Source: Epithemia pelagica
Lineage: Eukaryota; Protista; Bacillariophyta
Assembly (NCBI GenBank): GCA_946965045.2
Contig: OX337231.1
Location: 1,054,001-1,118,000, forward strand
Direction of reading: 5' to 3'
DNA length: 64,000 nucleotides
The position numbers and the translations under genes are program-made. The notes beneath the pieces were generated by a model that was not told the origin of the DNA, did not search any database, and worked only from the letters and a program-made list of their open reading frames with translations. Of the stretch, positions 11,061 through 36,400 are shown in pieces. How positions within the stretch are numbered: the first letter of the stretch is position 1; each line of letters opens with the position of its first letter.

Positions 11061-11191
11061 AACACACACGTGAAACAGAAAAAAAATGCACAAACACAAG
11101 ACAACTGGCAATGGCCCACAACAAGGAAAGCTCTTAGTACATTGACTGCAACTAGAATACAAGCATAGTCAACTCTATATGTATCTAGGTA

Positions 11192-11215
11192 CACGTTTAA
11201 TACCTAATGACAAAA
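11192..11215 (+). repeat. Left TIR of pogo-like element
   Basis: CACGTTTAATACCTAATGACAAAA preceded by TA. Confidence 0.88.
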
Positions 11216-11462
11216 TGCGTCATTTTCATCAAATGACACGGAAAATTTAGGTTTTTTAAAAAAAAAGTTTTTTCGTTCTTTGGAATTCAAGCAGCACCAA
11301 GATACCGTCCAAGGAAAGAGAGCAACACCTCCACTGCCGTAGATAGAAGAAAGGAATTGACATCACCATGTGGAAGTGTGTTTTTCTCATGATCCACAAG
11401 TTTTGATGTGAGAACGAGGAATCGATCCAAGACATTGAGCAGTGACGATACAAGGCGAGTGA

Positions 11463-12141
11463 TTGGCTATTGCTGCTGGTCTTGTGTCGAATCTTGGTCA
11501 TGGTGGTGGACAAGTTGATTCGCCAAGAGAGGCTCGACAGAGAGCACATCTTCAACAGCAGCATTCGGCCTTTTTGGAACGCATGGTTTCGTCACGCCAC
11601 CAACAAGAGAATGACGACGACGAAAACGACCAAGACGAGCCGCCGCCCAGTTCGACCATCAGTACTTGCGTCCAAGAATCGGTCGTTCAACTCTTGTTGG
11701 AATGGAATCCTTATCGTCACGCCGCCAACAAGAGAATGACGACGACGAAAACGACCAAGACGAGCCGCCGTCCAGTTCGACCATCAGTACTTGCGTCCAA
11801 GAATTGGTCGTTCAACTCTTGTTGGAACGGAGTCCTTGGAGTGCCTTGATGGTAGATGCCAAGGATGGTCGATTGCCCTTGACCCATGCCTGGGTTGGCA
11901 TGCCAGTATTGCACCCCTGATTGCCGCCTATCCTCGAGCCTTGGAATGTCACGATCCTGTGACGGGCTTGTACAATTTTCAATGGGCGGCCGTGTGTTCC
12001 CCCCAACTCGATACCGTGTACAGTTTGGTCCGACCCCTCCCGGCCCTCTTGTGTGCCTGTCGGCGTCCTCGTACTACTAGTAGCAGTAGTTGTCGGGACG
12101 AGAACTCACTGACAGGAGGCATCACCAAACACACCACATAG
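11463..12141 (+). pseudogene. Frameshifted relic of a diatom ankyrin-repeat-like gene inside the pogo element, containing a 125-bp tandem duplication (11590-11837)
   Basis: AKDGRLPLTHA and LIAAYPRALECHDPVTGLYNFQWAA..LDTVYSLVR resemble the C-terminus of diatom ankyrin-like proteins; the reading is split over several frames. Confidence 0.5.
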
Positions 12142-12205
12142 GAATGCACGACAAGTGCCAATTCCCACAAAAAACCCGCACCATGATACCGTGTCGCTCG
12201 ACTCC

Positions 12206-12416
12206 ATGACAACCTCTGCTTGTGGAAACAACAACGAAGCAAAACAACGAAGCAATGGGTGCCAAACGACAAAAGACATGATTGGAATGGATACAACACG
12301 TTTTCATGTAGATGGAGCATGACAACCTCTGCTTGTGGAAACAACAACAAAGCAATGGGTGCCAAACGACAAAAGACATGATTGGAATGGATACAACACG
12401 TTTTCATGTAGATGGA
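12206..12416. repeat. Two-copy tandem duplication (about 100-112 bp units)
   Basis: catgacaacctctgcttgtggaaacaacaac...ttttcatgtagatgga occurs twice; the second copy lacks a short internal segment. Confidence 0.85.
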
Positions 12417-12803
12417 TCACCGCAGACACACAAACCCCAGGAGGACCGTGGATTTGGTTCACAAATGACAGTACAATTCCCTCTGTCGTGGGGTGTTCTG
12501 GAGAACACCAGGAATCCAGAAATGGCACGGTGCGTTTGACGCTCGCTTGGATGAACCGGAGCCGCAGACACTGGTACAGAATCGACATGCGCGGACGCGC
12601 AACACGAGAGAGAGAGTCTGTTATAATAACTCATTGATTAGTGTTATTCAAATAATCAGAGGCTTTTATATTGCTTAGGGAGTCGACGAATACTAGAATA
12701 TGTAGATATGCAGTGCTGCTGGGAAAGATGAGTCTCGACATCCGAGGACAATTGGTTACATGTGGTTTTCAACATTTTTCTTCCACAAACCAGAATCGTT
12801 GTC

Positions 12804-15800
12804 TCAAACACATCCCTTGGGAGCACCACCTCGCGGGCGCTTGTACTTGCCATCAACACCCAACGTAGCTGGGTGTTTGGGTTGGACAAAATCCCACTGT
12901 TGATTGCTCTCGGCAGATTCCATTTCACCCATGCAGTCCTCCCCGTTCTCGTCACAATTATTTGTGCATCTATGGTCAAGCCGATCAACATGGTCAGTGG
13001 CGCATGTTCTGTTGGTGGGGCTGGTACTCTCATTGTGTTCTTGTGTATTGTTGTCGTCATCAGTGACAGAGTGAGGCTCGTCCAGACCACCATCATCAGT
13101 GCTGGTGGAGTCGAAGTCTACGCCTCCTGCATCTTCTGCAGCAGCATCGAGGCTACCATCATCGGTGGTGGTGTCCAAGAAGTTCAAGTCACCACCAGCA
13201 TCAGCGGTGGTATCCAAGAAGTTCAAGACATCCTCCTCCTCAGCAGCAGTGCCATCGTCCACCAGGCTTCCACCAGCAGAGTCCAAGACATCATCCTCTT
13301 CAGCAGCAGTGCCATCGTCTACCAGGCTACCACCAGCAGAGTCCAAGACATCATCCTCTTCAGCAGCAGTGCCATCGTCCACCAGGCTACCACCAGCAGC
13401 ATCCAAGACATCCTCCTCCTCAGCAGCAGTGCCGTCATTCAGGGTGCCAGCAGAATCCAAGCCTCCAGCATCATCATGATCATCAGCAGATGGATGATCC
13501 AGGTTGCCGAATGGCCTCCCTGTCACTGCTGCACCGTCAATCCCAAGGATTGTGCCCAAAAACGAATGAATTCGACGAAGCTCTTGCTCTGGAATAGAGC
13601 CAAAGACTGTCGAGAGAATATGTTCCATCCTTTCAGTTGATTGCTTTTGGAGTTGGCCAACCAAGAATGCATCGTTTGCTTGGACAGCACGGCTATACAA
13701 GGCAGACTCTGAATATGAGTTGATCTGGCCAGACTCAAGTTGTGAGAGCTTTTGCTCGTCACGTTCCGTCCAAACTACATTCGAGGGAACGGCCATGTTC
13801 TTGTATTTTTCATAAAGCTCTTTCAATCGAGAGTTGGTCATATTGCTAAGGGCCTCTCCTCTCGGTGACTTGAGCCCTTGCTTGTACCGAATAAAAATGC
13901 GCAAGTCGGGGTTTGATTGAATAGGACGACCCGATGCAATCAGTGCATCAAATTTTTCTTTGATTGGTTGGAACTTACTGGCAAGTTCTTTCTGTTTCAG
14001 CATCGACTTATGCTCTTCCTCCATGTTGGCCCGTGCATAGGCGAGGAGCATATCGGTGCAGTTCAATGCATCCCCACCCATGGTATACCGAAAGAACTGC
14101 CCAGCTGTCTTCACAGTGCCAAGAAGGTCCTGGCGCTCTCTTGTATTTTGCATCGTTGAAACTGCATTGCGCCCAGACACCTGTGCTTCAGTGATGCGAG
14201 GTGCATCCCGACGCAAGGAATTCACAGCCGTCTCGGAATAGCCGGCTGAAATCAAGGCTTCGGCTGCATGGTGATTGTCCTGCTCCATCATTGAGATGAG
14301 AGAGCTGTAGGGATCACCGCTCTCAACTTCAGTACCTTCCGTCTCAACAATCTCATGACAAAGCCTGTCACTCTTGAGAGCATTGCGAGTCGCCGGGCAG
14401 TAGCCACACTTTTCACGGGCGCTTCGGATGTTTTCTGGACGAAGGCCCATGGTGAAAGCGGCCTTTAGGTGGATCAGCTGACCATTTGGCAATGGTACAT
14501 CACCACCAAAAAGGATGTAGCCAATATCATCGAGGGAGAGCGTCGCTTTCCCAGCCCCCTCGATAAGAAGACGCTCCTTGTACAAAAGATCACGGTTCTC
14601 GTACAGAACCTTTTTCATTGGACCAAAGATCTGGTCCATCTCTTGACCAATCTCAGTTCCATTTGGAAGCCCGGGGTAAAAAAAGAACCCCATATCCCTT
14701 GCTCGTGCAGTAAAAGAAGCGCTGGCTGGTCCGAAGCTTCCACGCCCAGTCCCACTGTCGAGCTTAACCAGATAGGGATTGGCAGGACTCGCATCGGGGA
14801 AGATCTTTACCAATACCTCTAAGCTCCATTTGGCCCACAGTTCACTTGTCATACCACCTTTTGGTGTGTATGCAATTGTTGCATCAACGAAGTTTTGCGT
14901 GCGATTGAACCCCCATTGTCCGCAAATCTGCTGGAACCCTTGAAGCATAGCTGGGTTCACCTTCACCTTGTCTTTTGCTGATGTCGGGAATAATATGAGT
15001 GGTGGAATTGCCTCGTCTGCAAATGTCACACCCGCAAGGATTGTACATTTAAGACTGGAGCGTAACACTGGCTCCCCAGCATCAGGAATGGAGTGCACAG
15101 TGTAGACAAGTGAAGGGCGTCCACCTGCATGTTTGTCCTCACCATTGAGGGTGAACGCCATCTCATCCAGCTGCAAAATTTTGGATGTGTCATGGAAGAT
15201 CACATTTCCATGCGCTTTGCGTTCTTGATCATTCATATGCCATTTGGCAAAGCCGTTATCTACCACAAAGTGCTCCCAATTCTTATAGTGCTGTTCCTGG
15301 GCTTGGTAGGTCAGCCAACGAACACGTCGTGCATCTCGTTGGTCACGTGCTCCAACGTCGTTCATGCGTGCATTGTCCTGCGTGATCCGCCGGTAGAATA
15401 CAGTGTCATCGAGGTCGTGCTTGCTATTTACAACGGCACCAACTAACGAAATGCATTCTGACCTGCTGAGACGAATGTCCACATTTGCTTGCTCCAATGC
15501 CAAGCATGTATGCAGAAGAGTAGCAATATCATTGTACTCTTTCTCTGGGATCACACTTCTTCGTCCTCTCCTTGCTGGCGAGACACCAACCTGCCCTTGT
15601 TGCACTGCACTCTCAAGCGATCGTCCCGAAACAAGCTGCATAGTCTCGCCGTTGGGAAACCTCACACCAAAGATGTCACTGACCTTTTCGGCGCAGTGAT
15701 CTTTCGTGAAAGTCCTCTCCAGCGGAATCTCCCCATTCTTGGAACAGTTGAGAAGCACCGTCCCAACCTTGTGAGCAACTTTCCGCAGATCATCCAATTC

Positions 15801-16589
15801 CTTTTTCGCACGGACTTGTGCGTGTGCTTGCTGGGATGTCTTGCGATGGGCAGTGCTGTTGCATGCCAAACTAATGGCTGACAAAACTGACCCATTGTCT
15901 TTGTTGAGGAGACGAATGCGTGGTATGTCACGGTTGTTGCTTGATTCCGTTGTATTTTCTGTTGTTGTTGAGTTGCCACATGCAGTTTGTGTGAGTGGTG
16001 ATGCTAGAACCTGCTCATCACCCCACTCCTCCGCATCAACATTAATGAGCATGTTGACAGGATCATTGGATCTGTGGCTGTCCTGGTTGTTATGTTGATA
16101 TCCCTCGCCATTCTGGTTGCGGTGGTAACAGTGTCGAGTATTATTTTTGTTGCGTCGAATGGGTTTGGGGATAAATCCTTCATTTTGTAGCTGTCGTTGG
16201 CAGCGCTTGTAGACAGTAGAGCCACCCTTTGTGTCTGGATGGGGATACCCAGCAAGTCGCATCATTTCTGAAAGAGTCTTCCGTTGAGGATGGAACTTGT
16301 TACCCGGGTTGAATGTTGCAAACTTGAACAGAGTTGTTGCTCTGTACTGCATGGAATCTGAGTCAGTTGAATAGTCTGGCTCTCCATCTTTAACAGATGA
16401 TGCCTCTTGAAGTGCTGCGAACAAGGTTTTTGATCCTTGCAACTGCTCTGCACTGATGCCAACCATTGTCATGGCATCTTCTCCCGACGGACTTGTGCCG
16501 GGGACAAGGCGTGATATCTCCACAGCCTTTTGAACGCTCTTTAACATGACATTGTCCACCATGGTATCTTCTGCATTTTGGTCTGTCAC
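12804..16589 (-). CDS. pogo-like DDD transposase (1261 aa) with long N-terminal HTH region and acidic repeat tail
   Basis: Uninterrupted ORF; putative triad ILQLDEM / VKLDSG / QEMDQ; TPKGGMT and PNGT motifs of DDE_1 transposases. First ATG near 16562; upstream exons are possible. Confidence 0.85.
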   Translation of the reverse strand: MTDQNAEDTMVDNVMLKSVQKAVEISRLVPGTSPSGEDAMTMVGISAEQLQGSKTLFAALQEASSVKDGEPDYSTDSDSMQYRATTLFKFATFNPGNKFHPQRKTLSEMMRLAGYPHPDTKGGSTVYKRCQRQLQNEGFIPKPIRRNKNNTRHCYHRNQNGEGYQHNNQDSHRSNDPVNMLINVDAEEWGDEQVLASPLTQTACGNSTTTENTTESSNNRDIPRIRLLNKDNGSVLSAISLACNSTAHRKTSQQAHAQVRAKKELDDLRKVAHKVGTVLLNCSKNGEIPLERTFTKDHCAEKVSDIFGVRFPNGETMQLVSGRSLESAVQQGQVGVSPARRGRRSVIPEKEYNDIATLLHTCLALEQANVDIRLSRSECISLVGAVVNSKHDLDDTVFYRRITQDNARMNDVGARDQRDARRVRWLTYQAQEQHYKNWEHFVVDNGFAKWHMNDQERKAHGNVIFHDTSKILQLDEMAFTLNGEDKHAGGRPSLVYTVHSIPDAGEPVLRSSLKCTILAGVTFADEAIPPLILFPTSAKDKVKVNPAMLQGFQQICGQWGFNRTQNFVDATIAYTPKGGMTSELWAKWSLEVLVKIFPDASPANPYLVKLDSGTGRGSFGPASASFTARARDMGFFFYPGLPNGTEIGQEMDQIFGPMKKVLYENRDLLYKERLLIEGAGKATLSLDDIGYILFGGDVPLPNGQLIHLKAAFTMGLRPENIRSAREKCGYCPATRNALKSDRLCHEIVETEGTEVESGDPYSSLISMMEQDNHHAAEALISAGYSETAVNSLRRDAPRITEAQVSGRNAVSTMQNTRERQDLLGTVKTAGQFFRYTMGGDALNCTDMLLAYARANMEEEHKSMLKQKELASKFQPIKEKFDALIASGRPIQSNPDLRIFIRYKQGLKSPRGEALSNMTNSRLKELYEKYKNMAVPSNVVWTERDEQKLSQLESGQINSYSESALYSRAVQANDAFLVGQLQKQSTERMEHILSTVFGSIPEQELRRIHSFLGTILGIDGAAVTGRPFGNLDHPSADDHDDAGGLDSAGTLNDGTAAEEEDVLDAAGGSLVDDGTAAEEDDVLDSAGGSLVDDGTAAEEDDVLDSAGGSLVDDGTAAEEEDVLNFLDTTADAGGDLNFLDTTTDDGSLDAAAEDAGGVDFDSTSTDDGGLDEPHSVTDDDNNTQEHNESTSPTNRTCATDHVDRLDHRCTNNCDENGEDCMGEMESAESNQQWDFVQPKHPATLGVDGKYKRPRGGAPKGCV
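13224..13460. repeat. Four 60-bp in-frame tandem repeats encoding DSAGGSLVDDGTAAEEDDVL
   Basis: Units start at 13224, 13284, 13344 and 13404. Confidence 0.92.
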
Positions 16590-17300
16590 CCGTCATCCCA
16601 CCATCACGTGTGGCGCCATCTCGGTCACGTTCGGGTTTATGCTGGGTCATCACACATACACATGTTTGGCATGGGATGGACGGGTTGATTCCATGTGGGA
16701 GGCGTGAATCCATCATTGTGCTGACCCCCAAACAACAATCAGCATCTCCGATGCCTTTATCCGTGACAACAAGGTGCACCTGCAGTTGCTGCCTCCGAAT
16801 GCCATTGTCATCCTATCATGTTGGACGAGGAGGGAACGAGATTTCTCTTCAAAATTTGATTCCAACGGTGCCAAGCCTGTCAGGTCGTGTGTGACTGACT
16901 GTGGTTGAAAATGTAGAACCTGGGGGATTTTGGTCTTGTTGGGGGGTGTTTTGTGGTCCCAGTCCCAGGGCGGGCGCACATTTGGATGATGATGGCTCCT
17001 CACATCTATGTTTCTTCGTGGGAACATCCAATCGGGGATTGTTGGCCTGCCTACCATTGACCATGTACATACTGTACCATAACGTCTAACACACTGTTTC
17101 ACTTGTCTGTGCACAGATGGCTATTCTCCGGATGACATTGGATCATCGTCGTGTCCACCAACCCAAGTCGGCACTATAGAAATATCCACAAAGGGGACCT
17201 GGTGACCCATAAAAACGTTCTATCTCATATCTAAGCTTAGCTACCTAGTTTGCCATTTTACCATGGCTTGCTCGTGCATTGACATACCAGAGTTTTCGTT

Positions 17301-17954
17301 TCAGAAAGGACTAGACAGCATTCGGTCCTGAGTTTCGGCAAACTGAAATGAAAGGTCACTCTCCATGGAAGCCACACTGCTTTCACCAGAATCCAAACTG
17401 TCATTCGTTTCGATCTTGATATGCTTCTGGGCAAACGAAACAGCCTTCTCCACAGATGCATTAACATTATCCTGACCACCACCAGCATGCTTCTTGTTGT
17501 TGGTCTCCTGGACGTCATCACCAGTTAAATCAATCAGTGCAGGAGAACTGATATCATCAGTTAAATCAATCACAGCAATGCCTTCCGTGATTTCTTGAGC
17601 AAGATCCAGCTTGATGTTGTTTGTGTGGGGGGAAGAGTTGTTGGAAGTAGCAGTCTTCTTGGATCCACATGCGCTGGTTTTCTTTGGCGGTGGAGTCATT
17701 AAATCAATGACTTCTTTGGCTGCAGGCATTGCTCTACCCTTCTTGGTCCGCTTCTTCTCTGCGGCCTGATTCATAGCACCACCAGCAGCTGCAATCGGAG
17801 CACTGGCACAAGCTGCAATCGGAGCACTGGCCGAAGAGTCCACAACCTTATTCTTACCAACCACTACGTCCTTCTTCTTGTTGGTAACCTCCTTGGTGTT
17901 CACTCGGTTCTTGTTACGGACACTGAGGCGACGGCCTCCAACAAATTCAGACAT
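17301..17954 (-). CDS. Transposon cargo protein with three VIDL-type SUMO-interacting motifs, a psi-KxE site and basic NLS-like patches
   Basis: atcATG at 17954; EVIDLMT, AVIDLTDD, LIDLTGDD, HIKIET, KKRTKK; otherwise low complexity; no stops or frameshifts. Confidence 0.65.
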   Translation of the reverse strand: MSEFVGGRRLSVRNKNRVNTKEVTNKKKDVVVGKNKVVDSSASAPIAACASAPIAAAGGAMNQAAEKKRTKKGRAMPAAKEVIDLMTPPPKKTSACGSKKTATSNNSSPHTNNIKLDLAQEITEGIAVIDLTDDISSPALIDLTGDDVQETNNKKHAGGGQDNVNASVEKAVSFAQKHIKIETNDSLDSGESSVASMESDLSFQFAETQDRMLSSPF

Positions 17955-18332
17955 GATGGATGATTCTGATAGAATGGACAAAGGCGTGCCGATTTCTGCT
18001 GTGCTTCCTTTTGTGAGAACATGGCAAACGTTCATCACTCACATGAAGAGCTTCACAATTCACGAGTCACTCATACAAAACTACAGAATACCTAGTTGAA
18101 CAGACAACAGTCCGCCAACTGGCGCCAAGAATTGCTGGCCTGCAGGCGTGGGATGTGGGACGTGTTCGTCAAACTCGACAAGACTCGAAACGCTTCCCAC
18201 CTTATCTTTTGCGACGATTGAGAGGTCACAAAAGAAGAGGTAAGTCAACATGTTGAGATCAAGAATAGAATCGCATTTCCATTCCTCTCTCTCACGCACA
18301 ATATACTGCAGCTTTGGATATAGAAAAGAATA

Positions 18333-18827
18333 ATGCAGTTGCCAAATGGTTTTTATATCATTCCTGAACAGGGACAAGAACTCCGACCAGGCGAAAGCTC
18401 CACTCTGTTCGCCGAACTGGACGTGAATGTCTATGTGAAAGACGACATTCCTTCAAGACCAGGCGATGATGATGGGCGTCTGATTGTTGATTGTGGTATG
18501 CTCTTGGTACAGCGTTCTGCACCAGACAACATTCTCTCAATCCGTGCTTTTGGTCGAGAGAAAACAGATCAGCATACCTTGCCTGACCTTGTCGTTCCCT
18601 TTTTCTACATAAATCAGGCATACGACAAGAAAATCTGCTCCAAGGGTGGATCTGTTACCAAGGGTAAGATTGTTATTTCAACCCACTGGTCTCTCAACAC
18701 CCAAATGACTATGAACCCGATGGTGATCACTCTCAAAATGTCTACGAATGGTCGGAAAACTTTTAAGACAGCCTGCCATAATGGAATGTGCAATTGGCCT
18801 CAAGAGACAGGTTTAGCCTTCGTGTAA
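18333..18827 (+). CDS. Hypothetical 164-aa cargo protein, divergent from the SIM ORF
   Basis: ATG-initiated intact ORF with globular-looking composition, inside the TIRs; no family recognised. Confidence 0.55.
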   Translation: MQLPNGFYIIPEQGQELRPGESSTLFAELDVNVYVKDDIPSRPGDDDGRLIVDCGMLLVQRSAPDNILSIRAFGREKTDQHTLPDLVVPFFYINQAYDKKICSKGGSVTKGKIVISTHWSLNTQMTMNPMVITLKMSTNGRKTFKTACHNGMCNWPQETGLAFV

Positions 18828-19872
18828 TTTGAATTGTTCGTAAGAATCTGAACTTGATTGTGTTTATTTTAATCTAGTGAACGTAGACTTTTGCATGGTT
18901 ATAAGTCGTCTTGCCATCCGAGCTCAACGAAGAGCCGCCGCCGGACAACGACTGACATCCTCTACCACTGCAGTGCCTTGCACAAATAGCACAATCTCTG
19001 ATTGTCTGTGTCTTCTACCAGCTTGTTGTCGTCTCTCATGGGTTCCTTCACCAATACACCTACGACTGAAACCACCACCACCTCTCCAAACAGTCCAACC
19101 ACCTTCTTGCATCCTACGTACACAAGGAACCAACCCCCACATTGGATTTGAAATTCTTGGCAAATGTGACCCAAAACAATAGACAGCATCGGATGACATG
19201 GGAATGTTGGCCATCCAAGATGAACCATCCTGTCGTGCATCTTCTCTCGTCCTTGACACGACAACGACGCCCAACAGCAGCGGCGAATCGTCGTCGTCCC
19301 CCCTGCAATTCGCCACCACTACTCCCCCGTCAATTGGCCAGTCAGTAGAGACTGGACCATCATCAATGAAGACAAGGTTAAGCCATTGACAAGCCCAACA
19401 CTGTTTTGGTAATTGTTGTAGTTGTGGTTGTGGTTGCGGTTGCGGTTCGATATTGGTTGATTGGTGAATTTTGTTGTTTTTGATGGGCGCATCGGCCAGC
19501 AACCAATCCCTTGTGCAAGGTGCCTTGGGCAGGCTATTTGCACAATATCAACTGTTGTGATCCACTAAGAAGCCCTGGGTTAGGATTCAACAAAAGCAAG
19601 CAAGGAAATGGTGAGTTGTATGGCAGAAGACGTCGATGACACAAAATGACACGAATCTCACCAAAATTTGCCTTCTTCTCTGGCTCTTTTTTGGATGCCA
19701 CAACCACAACCAACTCAAAGATGGAGCTACATACTTTCTGAGAACACTATTGTTGGGAGTTTAGAGGCCTTACTTGACCCATGGTGCTCAGGAATCGGTC
19801 GAGAACGGCCGACAACAACGGTCGAATTTCTAGAAACCTTAATGTGTACGAAAAAAATGTCATTTTTTAGGG

Positions 19873-19896
19873 TTTTGTCATTAGGTACTAAACGTG
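19873..19896 (-). repeat. Right TIR of pogo-like element
   Basis: Reverse complement CACGTTTAGTACCTAATGACAAAA; followed by TA. Confidence 0.88.
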
Positions 19897-20508
19897 TACT
19901 CCTCCTATTTGTTTAGGCTTCCTGGCCCTATCCTTTGTATTGTGTCCTTCCTTAGACTCTGATGTTGTCCACACACTGGTTGATTGTCATCTTGTCATTT
20001 TTTATCCTTCTTCTAATTCGGTTGATAGCCGCGTTTACTGATGATCCAGGGGGTAGATCTTGACAGTAGTATTCATGCTATGGTCATTCATTTTGCTGGA
20101 TTGTTGGATTTTGTTGCAGCCCCATTGTCATTTCTTGTGGTTTGTCGAAAAGTGAGAAGTTAGACGATTCATGGCACAAAATATGAGGCGAGGCCGGCGT
20201 TCAGATTTCAACGATCGAAGGCAGGCTGACGATTTAACATGGCAGGCGCTTTGGAAAAAAAAACAAGAGGCCAAAGTTGCGCAACGCACGAAGGACAGAA
20301 AATATACACCTCTTGAATCGTTTCCTTTAATCTCTAGGAGTATATTCCAAAATTGAGTAGTGGCAATAAGGGGGTAAGTAAGTTATCGGGCGCGCGGAGC
20401 ATGTGCGGAGTCGGAGTGTGATATTGATATGGGCGGAGAAAGGCCAAACCAACCCGGATATAGAGCTTTCCTCCGCAAAATTTACACTGTAAACTTATCA
20501 CCGGAACA

Positions 20509-33419: not shown

Positions 33420-36400
33420 GATTGCTAGAATTCTTGCTGACTACATTTTTTGCCCTGTTCTGTTAGCTTTGGCTGATGTTGCATCTCCCATTGAAGCTGC
33501 TGTATCCCAGTGACAGAAAGGTCCAAAATATCATCATTGGATCACAATTGATGTGTGCATCTAACATTAAGATCCCCTGGAGTAATATGCAGTGACCAGT
33601 AACACAAAATCTGGTGTCGACTTTCCGGATGTCAACAATATAGTCTTCTAAGACATACTCCTTCTGTATGATAACAATATAGTCTTCCATGGCTTTTCCC
33701 AGAGCTTGGAAGATTGCTTCAGCCCCAATGCCACCCCTTAGACATCCTCCTTCTGTATGATCATTTCCTTAAGACACAAGACGATGCAAAGCAGCGTGGC
33801 TTCTAGAAGTCGAGATGAAGAGTGTTGGGAAAGTGGTGTGGGGGATCCTTGCCATGAAAGGTGTTGAAAAGTGTTTCGTCCGGTGCTGAAAAGTGTTTCG
33901 TCCGGTGCACCAAAAGAGGGACCAAACAGGTGATTGATGTGCTATAAAAAGGGTGCATCTGGTGTCTGGTGTGAAAAACACGTCCCATGAGCACCTAACA
34001 GTACGTTGTAGTTCATAGTAATAAACCAAACTCATGCATGGAGGACGGACCGGAGCAGTCATTTGAGAGAGAGGGGATATAGAAACAGAGCCTACAGCTA
34101 CTACACTACATAAAAAGTTGCCATGAGGCCCATTTGAGTACAGTCCCATATTTGAATGGAAATTGGCAAAGGAGCCGATGGACAAGAGAAGGAAAGACAC
34201 TGGCAGTGTGCGGAGTAGATTGGAAACAGTGGCAGGAGCTGCGACTGCTGGAGCATCCTGTGATGATGGTGAACTGGGCTGTGACAAAGAAGACATATCA
34301 TTCCTCTGTGGACCGGGTGATGGAGCAGCATCCGGTCGACCGAGCAAAGGAACAGATCCAGCTGAAGGTACAGCTCCCTCTAATGACAAGACAGGAGGAC
34401 CAGGGACTCGGAAAGGAAAGAGAGCTGCAATGCAGAAGATTCTCAATGGAATGAAGAATTCAATAATGAGAATGACGATGCATGCTGGAAACAACATTAT
34501 CCTACAGGAAGTCTTGTGAGTAAGTGTTGTGTGCAATTGATGGAGGACTGCAATAATCATGCCAATTGCTCTAATGAGGGTGCTTGTTGGATGAAGTTAG
34601 TAGGTGAAACACTTGCTTATGACGTTTTGCTCCTTGCGGACACGTCTTCATCCAAGGTTTCCACAGGAACTGTGGACAGGCAATGTAAAACTGTCTGCAA
34701 GATGATAACCATTGTGAAAAACCCAAGTGCAACCATCATGTGAGAAGTTGCTCCCTGTTAGAGATGAAGTATTCATTCTGACCATCCCTGTAGATTGTTT
34801 GGATTTGTGGTCCCACACAGCGAGGGAAAGTGGCCAAGGAAAAATCAGTGATTTGAATGCAACGTGACATAAAGAAATTTCATTCAGACAACGATTGATA
34901 TGATGGCATCAAATCATTGAGAGGCATGAATGAGGAGGGCATGGACTTTCTTGAATCTATGGAAATGAAACTCGCACAAAAGGTCAGATGTGGTGATTGT
35001 AGTAACATGTTCATGACGTTTCTGTGACAGAGTTACTGCACGCGGATTTGGTACGCTCCTGAAGACAATTCTGGGGGTAGATTTCAAAAAGAGTAAACAT
35101 ATACTCACAAAATGCATTGGAATTCACCCGTTTTCACCAACTCCTCTATATAGATTGATGTATATTGCACGCCTCATTCATTTTTGCCTGGTTGCTGGAA
35201 GCTTTTGCTTGAGGCTGGGAGTATGCGCATGATGGTGATGCGGCATTAATATTGATGAGCGCATGAACTGGAAAAAATGCGCCTGTTGGTTCTTGAGTGC
35301 ACATGAAGTTGAAGTCGGTGCTATGTGGTTCGTGCGCTTGCTGATTTTGGACATGCGCGTGCTCTCAGTAGGACGCGCGGATGATCCCAGTAGGTTGCGC
35401 TTAGGGGTGCTTTCTTCTCGATAATTAAACCGCCGTAAACCGGCGTACCGTTCCCTCCTTAGATGGTTGCATTGCATGGTGTCAAGGAGGGGTTAACAGC
35501 AGAAACCATAATGTGGTGATCTCTGCAACCATAATGTGGTGATCTCTGTAATAGGCCAACAAAATCATATTCAAAAACTGAATGCATTGTTTTTCTGAAG
35601 CATTTAAACAGCTCTCAGAGACGCAATCTTCCTTCTTGACGTTGCATCATATCCAAAATCAAAGGCTCATCATGCTGACCAAAAGATGTTGATAGATCTT
35701 TCAGAAGGAGAAACCAACGGCTATATTGTTGATATCCTGAATGAAGAGGACAACCCTTTTGTTTGTTACTGGTTTCTTGTATGTTCCAAAGAATGGCACT
35801 GAAATCAGTATAGCCAGACCAACAAGAGCCACCCACTCCCAGCGGCTCACACCGGTGAGTGTGTGCTGAAGCACTCCCAGTTTGTGCATATAATGTGCTT
35901 ACCAGTTTACAACTAAGTGAACTTTGTTTAGCACTTTTTTCTATCTCAATACAGGGCTACTGTAGTCTTCATGTGATTGTCGAGTATCACTTCTTGGGGC
36001 TTCTGTATCACAGATTGTTGGGCATTTTAAAATCCTCAGTGAGGCTTCAGCAGTCGCTTTCAGACTCACTGAGTGAATGCCCAAGCAGCATGTGATTCTC
36101 ATTGTTGCTTCCAGTATCTTGCTGTTGCTGAGCCAGTTGTCATGGCTCACCATGATGATGTACATGCATGCCAATTTGCAGATAACTGGACAAGACGATT
36201 GAAATGGTGACGACCACCTTCCCCCAGAGCACCCGGCAGCCATGGAATTTTGGCGTTTTCTAAAATTTCTTCGGACAGTATTCATCCAAGACAATGGCTG
36301 CCATGATATGTCTCATACAGTCCTCTGAGGACCCCCGTGCACAGAGAAGACTTTCATACAGTCCTCTGAGGACCCCTGTGCACAGAGAAGACTCTCTCAC

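Follow-up and report, generated by a model that had tools for sequence, protein, structure and literature searches.

The 217-aa open reading frame (ORF) on the minus strand at 17301-17954 (start ATG 17954, stop 17303-17301) of the window analyzed here, a 64,000-nt stretch of DNA from the diatom Epithemia pelagica, raised the question of whether a DNA transposon may carry a gene of its own that engages the SUMO system of its host. SUMO is central to heterochromatic transposon silencing in animals and fungi, and viruses target SUMO as well. Silencing pathways in diatoms are, to our knowledge, poorly known, and we know of no transposon that encodes a dedicated SUMO-chain binder; a full-text literature search likewise brought up no poly-SIM protein described as encoded by a transposon. 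The original prediction, made from the DNA letters, had described the ORF as transposon-encoded, rich in SIMs, and a candidate anti-silencing factor. We examined the carrier element, the ORF and its copies, and the origin of the motifs, and weighed the SUMO reading against other explanations.

The carrier transposon

The ORF was located within a whole DNA transposon of 8,705 bp (11192-19896, minus strand), flanked by TA at 11190-11191 and 19897-19898. A repeat search placed the left terminal inverted repeat, of 24 nt, at 11192-11215 (plus strand) and the right one, with one mismatch to the left, at 19873-19896 (minus strand); the inverted ends measured 24-27 nt, and the ORF lay between them as had been predicted. 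A second insertion was present on another contig of ENA assembly ERZ21939226 (L001:8134-16557), an assembly in which the window's own locus is L002. The two copies were 98-99% identical, the match stopped exactly at the ends of the element, and both copies were TA-flanked within unrelated flanks. As two such closely matching insertions carried TA duplications in unrelated flanks, the carrier element is mobile and recent, and the claim that the ORF is transposon-borne was upheld. Inverted repeats together with TA target-site duplications, seen here at both insertions, are as expected of a Tc1/mariner/pogo element.

Within the element, tandem repeats occupied the non-coding DNA on its 3' side at 11589-11837 (units of 124-125 nt) and 12205-12419 (units of 100-113 nt), and the copy number of the 125-nt unit was unequal between the two insertions. 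A simple-repeat stretch at 19319-19515 (translated PQPQPQ...) showed a Logan depth 10-25 times that of the rest of the element, and this repeat was also found on unrelated contigs, biofilm-metagenome contigs among them. The inverted-end sequence itself gave no matches to metagenome contigs.

The transposase

The transposase gene occupied 12804-16562 on the minus strand, in an open frame of 1,261 codons with a probable start at ATG 16562, which stands in an ACCATGG context. No Pfam family matched the window transposase, and its family returned no solved structure by sequence; the fold search alone succeeded. An AlphaFold2 model of the transposase core (pLDDT 75, pTM 0.77) gave the Sleeping Beauty (E 8.6e-4) and Mos1 catalytic domains as the best fold matches, with a probability of 0.99. 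Twelve relatives of the transposase, 37-44% identical, were recovered, two of them from Seminavis robusta and Cylindrotheca closterium; all named relatives were diatoms, and the remainder lay on metagenome contigs. PF03184 (DDE_1) was detected in one of 11 family members (E 2.2e-5), and an ESM Atlas feature search pointed to DDE_1 clusters at 0.86-0.89, a lead only. Three aspartates, D475, D611, and D652 (numbered from GTG 16589), were invariant in 11 aligned sequences, giving a DD41D arrangement. As modeled, the transposase belongs with the RNase-H-like DDE/D enzymes and has a predicted Tc1/mariner-type fold.

The inverted ends, the TA duplication, the RNase-H-like DDD core, and the DDE_1 match in one relative are shared with pogo and Tc1/mariner elements. 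In contrast to those elements, the carrier encodes a protein without a Pfam match. It also departs from them in its DD41D spacing and in a long, conserved C-terminal domain, to which is added an acidic tail encoded by 60-nt tandem repeats (13220-13496). A description of the carrier as pogo-like is reasonable, and strict pogo membership is not proven.

The position of the ORF, on the same strand and directly 5' of the transposase, suggested an alternative in which a longer isoform of the transposase takes in the ORF as an upstream exon and thereby carries the SIMs. The shared frame of several open stretches in the 5' region would fit such an exon. However, the N-termini of most relatives, including the Seminavis and Cylindrotheca gene models, begin just upstream of one conserved block, as does ATG 16562 in its good start context, and the two ORFs are set apart by 711 nt in which every frame contains stops. 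Because the transposases of the relatives start at the same conserved block, the ORF is unlikely to be a first exon or the N-terminus of the transposase, and we regard the upstream-exon explanation as very improbable.

The ORF and its product

The ORF lies in an enlarged 5' region of 3.3 kb (16590-19872, minus strand). Each of the features listed in the original prediction was found in the translation. VIDLM, the first motif, corresponds to residues 82-86 (17697-17711); VIDLT, the second, to residues 128-132 (17559-17573); and LIDLT, the third, to residues 140-144 (17523-17537), all on the minus strand. The acidic flanks claimed for the last two motifs were also present, as DD after VIDLT and GDD after LIDLT. 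IKIE (17409-17420, minus strand; residues 179-182) fits the psi-K-x-E sumoylation consensus as a motif match only, KKRTKK (17739-17756, minus strand; residues 67-72) is a basic, NLS-like patch, and PPPKK occupies residues 88-92. Charge was split along the product, with 22 K/R and 7 D/E in the N-terminal half vs. 7 K/R and 20 D/E in the C-terminal half.

No Pfam family matched the product at E values up to 1, and it holds two Cys and three His in total, consistent with the claim that it has no RING domain. Single-sequence AlphaFold2 predicted a disordered chain (mean pLDDT 49) with a single helix at residues 167-177; the SIM-type motifs had no predicted secondary structure, which is weak evidence as such models are poor.

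The frame stays open upstream of the ORF, to ATG 18035 and GTG 18038, which would extend the product to 244-245 aa. A fourth and weaker SIM-like stretch, LSILSESS (17958-17981, minus strand), is present only with the start at ATG 18035. Four open pieces shared one common frame on the minus strand (19547-18927, 18452-18084, 18038-17304, and 17120-16716), and an 84-nt in-frame GT..AG interval at 18091-18008 could join the 123-codon piece (18452-18084) to the ORF. The gene that holds the 217-aa ORF may thus be longer or spliced. Repeat units of 36, 24, and 47 nt were observed inside the DNA of the ORF.

Related elements and the absence of the cargo

The carrier, at 8.7 kb, is larger than its relatives, which are about 5 kb. 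Termini of the type TACACGTTTA... bound L003, L007, and L008, and the same type opens the contig of L006; the ends of L005 were more diverged (TACCAGTTTAAG...). The element of Seminavis (L003) measured 5.5 kb, L005 5.0 kb, and L007 5.24 kb; in the Cylindrotheca locus (L008), a similar left end was seen and the right end was not located. The distance from the end of the element to the transposase start was about 420-480 nt in L003, L005, L007, and L008, vs. 3.3 kb in the window. None of these four elements had an upstream ORF, and the cargo DNA had no similarity to the related loci. Since four related elements of about 5 kb are without it, the ORF is a young, lineage-specific cargo, and for the same reason it is dispensable for transposition.

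Searches beyond these elements gave the same picture. A word search of proteins returned the ORF's own 90% cluster and nothing else; its two members are the window copy and L001. HMMER, run exhaustively against 1.84 billion representative proteins, likewise returned just that cluster. A tblastn scan of metagenomes found no homologues of the ORF, and the ESM Atlas gave no usable match, its recognition score being low at 1011. With only its own copies found, the ORF is an orphan. Conservation, which the original prediction had listed as a check, was not seen, as the ORF was absent from the four related elements and had no homologues in protein searches.

An ORF of this kind could have been captured from the host, in the manner of Pack-MULEs, as a fragment of a SUMO-targeted ligase or PIAS-like protein that contained the SIM region; this explanation concerns origin and is compatible with the other readings. 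Host-fragment capture occurs in DNA transposons, and an extra 2.8 kb that four relatives are missing is what such an event could leave behind. Yet no parent gene appeared in the protein searches, although the collection includes proteins of the same assembly, and Logan depth was equal over cargo and transposase. Because of this equal depth, there is no extra near-identical copy of the cargo outside the element. A host origin of the fragment is therefore unlikely in our estimate.

State of the copies

Divergence between L001 and the window copy was uniform, at 1.1-2.0% in coding and non-coding parts alike. Within the ORF, the two copies differed by three synonymous changes, five non-synonymous changes, and one nonsense change (codon 202); the transposase showed 10 synonymous, 30 non-synonymous, and one nonsense change, plus a 175-bp deletion. 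These differences are neutral decay after insertion, and selection is not readable from these counts. Purifying selection, which the original prediction had hoped to detect by dN/dS across copies, did not emerge, as the 3:5 ratio and nonsense change of the ORF followed the same pattern as in the transposase. The motifs were unchanged in L001, an uninformative result since this copy is 98% identical.

Logan contigs from three DNA runs of one organism contained the element, and low-depth fragments of it were also found in two biofilm metagenomes. The main Logan contig differed from the window within the ORF only at the synonymous site 17538, leaving the protein the same; this contig could represent a third variant, or else two copies collapsed into one path. 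A minor Logan variant, making up 22% of the depth in one run, carried a 4-nt deletion at 17444, at about codon 171. Both disruptions, the nonsense change and the deletion, lie downstream of the motifs. The ORF was thus intact in the main Logan contig, which encodes the same protein, but not in the two variants that are broken 3' of the motifs.

Chance, codon usage, and origin of the motifs

The matches to [VIL][VI]DL[TSM] exceeded expectation by a wide margin, with three observed vs. 0.003 expected in the 217-aa product, and at least two copies were obtained in none of 200,000 composition-preserving shuffles. The stricter pattern [VIL][VIL]DLT occurred twice in the 217 aa, vs. two occurrences in all the remaining six-frame ORFs of the window and of six related loci (108,668 residues), and it was not found in about 12,600 residues of the related transposases. 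The open frame itself also stood out. When the 3.3-kb region was shuffled 300 times, no stop-free run reached 245 codons, the longest being 199 codons, and the 217-aa ORF is too long for chance. Its codon-usage score was 0.27 bits per codon in frame, vs. at most 0.10 in the five other frames, while the remaining long ORFs that were taken as coding in the window scored 0.11-0.26 bits per codon in their own frames. ORF 33769-34560 had a negative codon-usage score in its listed frame.

The motif copies are not independent of each other. Motifs 2 and 3 derive from a 36-nt tandem duplication with 25-nt cores that are 88% identical (17517-17577), and the codons ATT-GAT-TTA were common to all three motif copies. 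TTA makes up 10% of the Leu codons in the window, and within the ORF it was used at the three motif Leu only. One codon set with a window-rare TTA points to growth of the motif array by internal duplication, a process for which selection would not be required.

The same repeats open the way to an explanation in which the ORF is a young frame of little or no function. It would have arisen as the 5' region of the element expanded by slippage and short duplications, with the xIDLT motifs as a by-product of copying a 13-36-nt unit and with no protein of consequence. This explanation gains from the internal 36-nt, 24-nt, and 47-nt DNA repeats and from the shared codons of the three motifs. It also gains from the lack of relatives in any search, the absence of the ORF from four related elements, the neutral decay of copies with two variants disrupted, and the wholly disordered predicted structure. 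It is weakened by the failure of 300 region shuffles to yield a 245-codon run, by in-frame codon usage on par with the accepted genes of the window, and by the fact that the duplicated unit yields an optimal SIM with acidic tails and RNF4 spacing. We consider an inert frame a serious possibility, with a likelihood clearly below even.

The motifs as SUMO-interacting sites

VIDLT and LIDLT are exact matches to the SIM consensus [V/I/L][V/I/L]DLT, which represents a type optimized for SUMO and found in RNF4 SIM2 and SIM3, Arkadia SIM2, and the VIDLT of PIAS; high SUMO affinity needs the Asp, Leu, and Thr of this consensus (bioRxiv 10.1101/2021.06.17.448718). Peptides of the (I/V)DLT form bind SUMO2/3, and the change of VIDLT to AADLT is the standard SIM null mutation (PMC4907222). 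With their acidic tails, motifs 2 and 3 fit this consensus exactly, so the assignment of the motifs to the best-characterized SIM class stood for these two. VIDLM appears to be a weaker SIM candidate because it is without the Thr and is followed by the basic TPPPKK in place of an acidic flank.

The arrangement of motifs 2 and 3 resembled that of RNF4 SIM2-SIM3. In both, two [V/I/L][V/I/L]DLT motifs lie in a disordered acidic stretch, and the distance between their aspartates is 12 residues, from Asp130 to Asp142 across an acidic linker in the ORF product and from Asp8 to Asp20 in the diSUMO3-binding RNF4 peptide. Given two SIMs with RNF4 spacing, an acidic linker, and predicted disorder, bivalent SUMO binding would be the natural prediction if the protein is made.

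The xIDLT motifs could instead serve a role apart from SUMO, such as beta-strand docking of a co-repressor (CtBP-type, PxDLS-like, or EAR-like), or the 10-mer TTAAATCAAT that underlies them could act as DNA or RNA. This 10-mer was found in three copies within 210 bp, vs. 0.32 expected in the entire window, and the use of the same codons is compatible with a constraint at the nucleotide level. IKLDLA (residues 114-119) is similar to an LxLxL motif. However, the canonical CtBP motif requires a Pro at position 1, which is missing in xIDLT, and the match to the SIM consensus was exact, acidic tails included. As the 10-mer was found neither at the ends nor elsewhere in the element, it was ruled out as a transposase-binding or subterminal repeat, which also weighs against a nucleotide-level role. 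A non-SUMO role seems improbable to us.

The reading that we favor is that the ORF product is an expressed SUMO binder, which we put forward tentatively and at only a little less than an even chance. The ORF would be a young accessory gene, limited to one lineage, within the expanded 5' region of a pogo-like transposon that was active recently. The 36-nt duplication would have produced the VIDLT-DD and LIDLT-GDD pair at the SIM2-SIM3 spacing of RNF4, with one or two weaker motifs upstream. The product is predicted to be intrinsically disordered, with a basic, NLS-like N-terminal half and an acidic C-terminal half that holds both optimal-type SIMs. If translated, it would most likely act in the nucleus by binding SUMO or its chains in a non-covalent and multivalent manner, without ligase activity. 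Translation, nuclear localization, and SUMO binding are what we infer for it from these features. The SIM prediction appears good and the gene is probably real, as a very young orphan; the hypothesis rests on two duplicated pentapeptides.

The proposal of a SUMO-pathway factor thus held in part: the status as transposon cargo, the SIM-class motifs, the predicted disorder, and the lack of a RING were supported, but conservation and purifying selection were not. To go from the motif match to a role in anti-silencing or in chromatin tethering is speculation. Such a role would make the product a stand-alone poly-SUMO binder without a RING, encoded by the transposon and acting either as a decoy that blunts SUMO-dependent heterochromatic silencing of the element or as a tether of the transposition machinery to sumoylated chromatin, and we give this a slim chance.

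Comparison with known systems

In the SUMO-targeted ubiquitin ligases (RNF4, Arkadia, and Slx5-Slx8), a RING lies C-terminal to the SIM array. As the 217-aa product has no RING domain, it is not a SUMO-targeted ligase. It further differs from RNF4 in that it has no sequence homology to it, is encoded by a transposon, and is known from sequence alone. Motif 2 is the same pentapeptide, VIDLT, that is found in the SIM of the PIAS family, and acidic residues follow in both; unlike PIAS proteins, the product has no SP-RING, SAP, or PINIT domain, and the likeness is at the motif level only.

Among other genetic parasites, HSV-1 ICP0, KSHV K-Rta, and HIV-1 integrase contain SIMs with which they engage the SUMO system of the host. 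Those proteins contain enzymatic domains and are backed by experiments, whereas the ORF described here predicts a stand-alone orphan peptide. Among transposons, plant Mutator-like elements (KI-MULEs) carry Ulp1-like SUMO-protease cargo, and the ORF, by its candidate motifs, would similarly be a SUMO-pathway-related passenger gene in a DNA transposon. In contrast, the Ulp1 cargo of KI-MULEs is a conserved catalytic domain that is recognizable by homology, while the window ORF has short motifs and no homologues.

If the ORF is expressed and its product binds SUMO, it would provide a compact natural poly-SIM module and a first handle on a conflict between transposons and SUMO in diatoms. Should the decoy or tether reading hold true, it would represent a counter-silencing strategy undescribed for any transposon.

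Other candidate cargo genes

Other ORFs were observed in the cargo region and in related elements. On the opposite strand of the cargo region, a 164-aa ORF (18333-18827, plus strand) had a coding-like score of 0.18 bits per codon in frame and no Pfam match, and it may represent a second gene of the cargo. Among the relatives, only the closest one, L006 (transposase 44% identical), likewise showed an enlarged 5' region, of about 1.95 kb. It contained a same-strand ORF of 166 codons (L006:655-1155, plus strand), acidic and Ser-rich, which is not similar in sequence to that of the window. This ORF includes the phospho-SIM-like AIELYSSDEDESE and two psi-K-x-E sites, IKQE and VKSE, and could be either a chance likeness in composition or a fast-evolving positional analogue. 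In L007, a 284-aa ORF (L007:4338-5192, plus strand) was located 3' of the transposase and within the inverted ends; it gave a weak FYVE/B-box zinc-finger signal (E 0.002) and may be a different passenger gene of a sister lineage.
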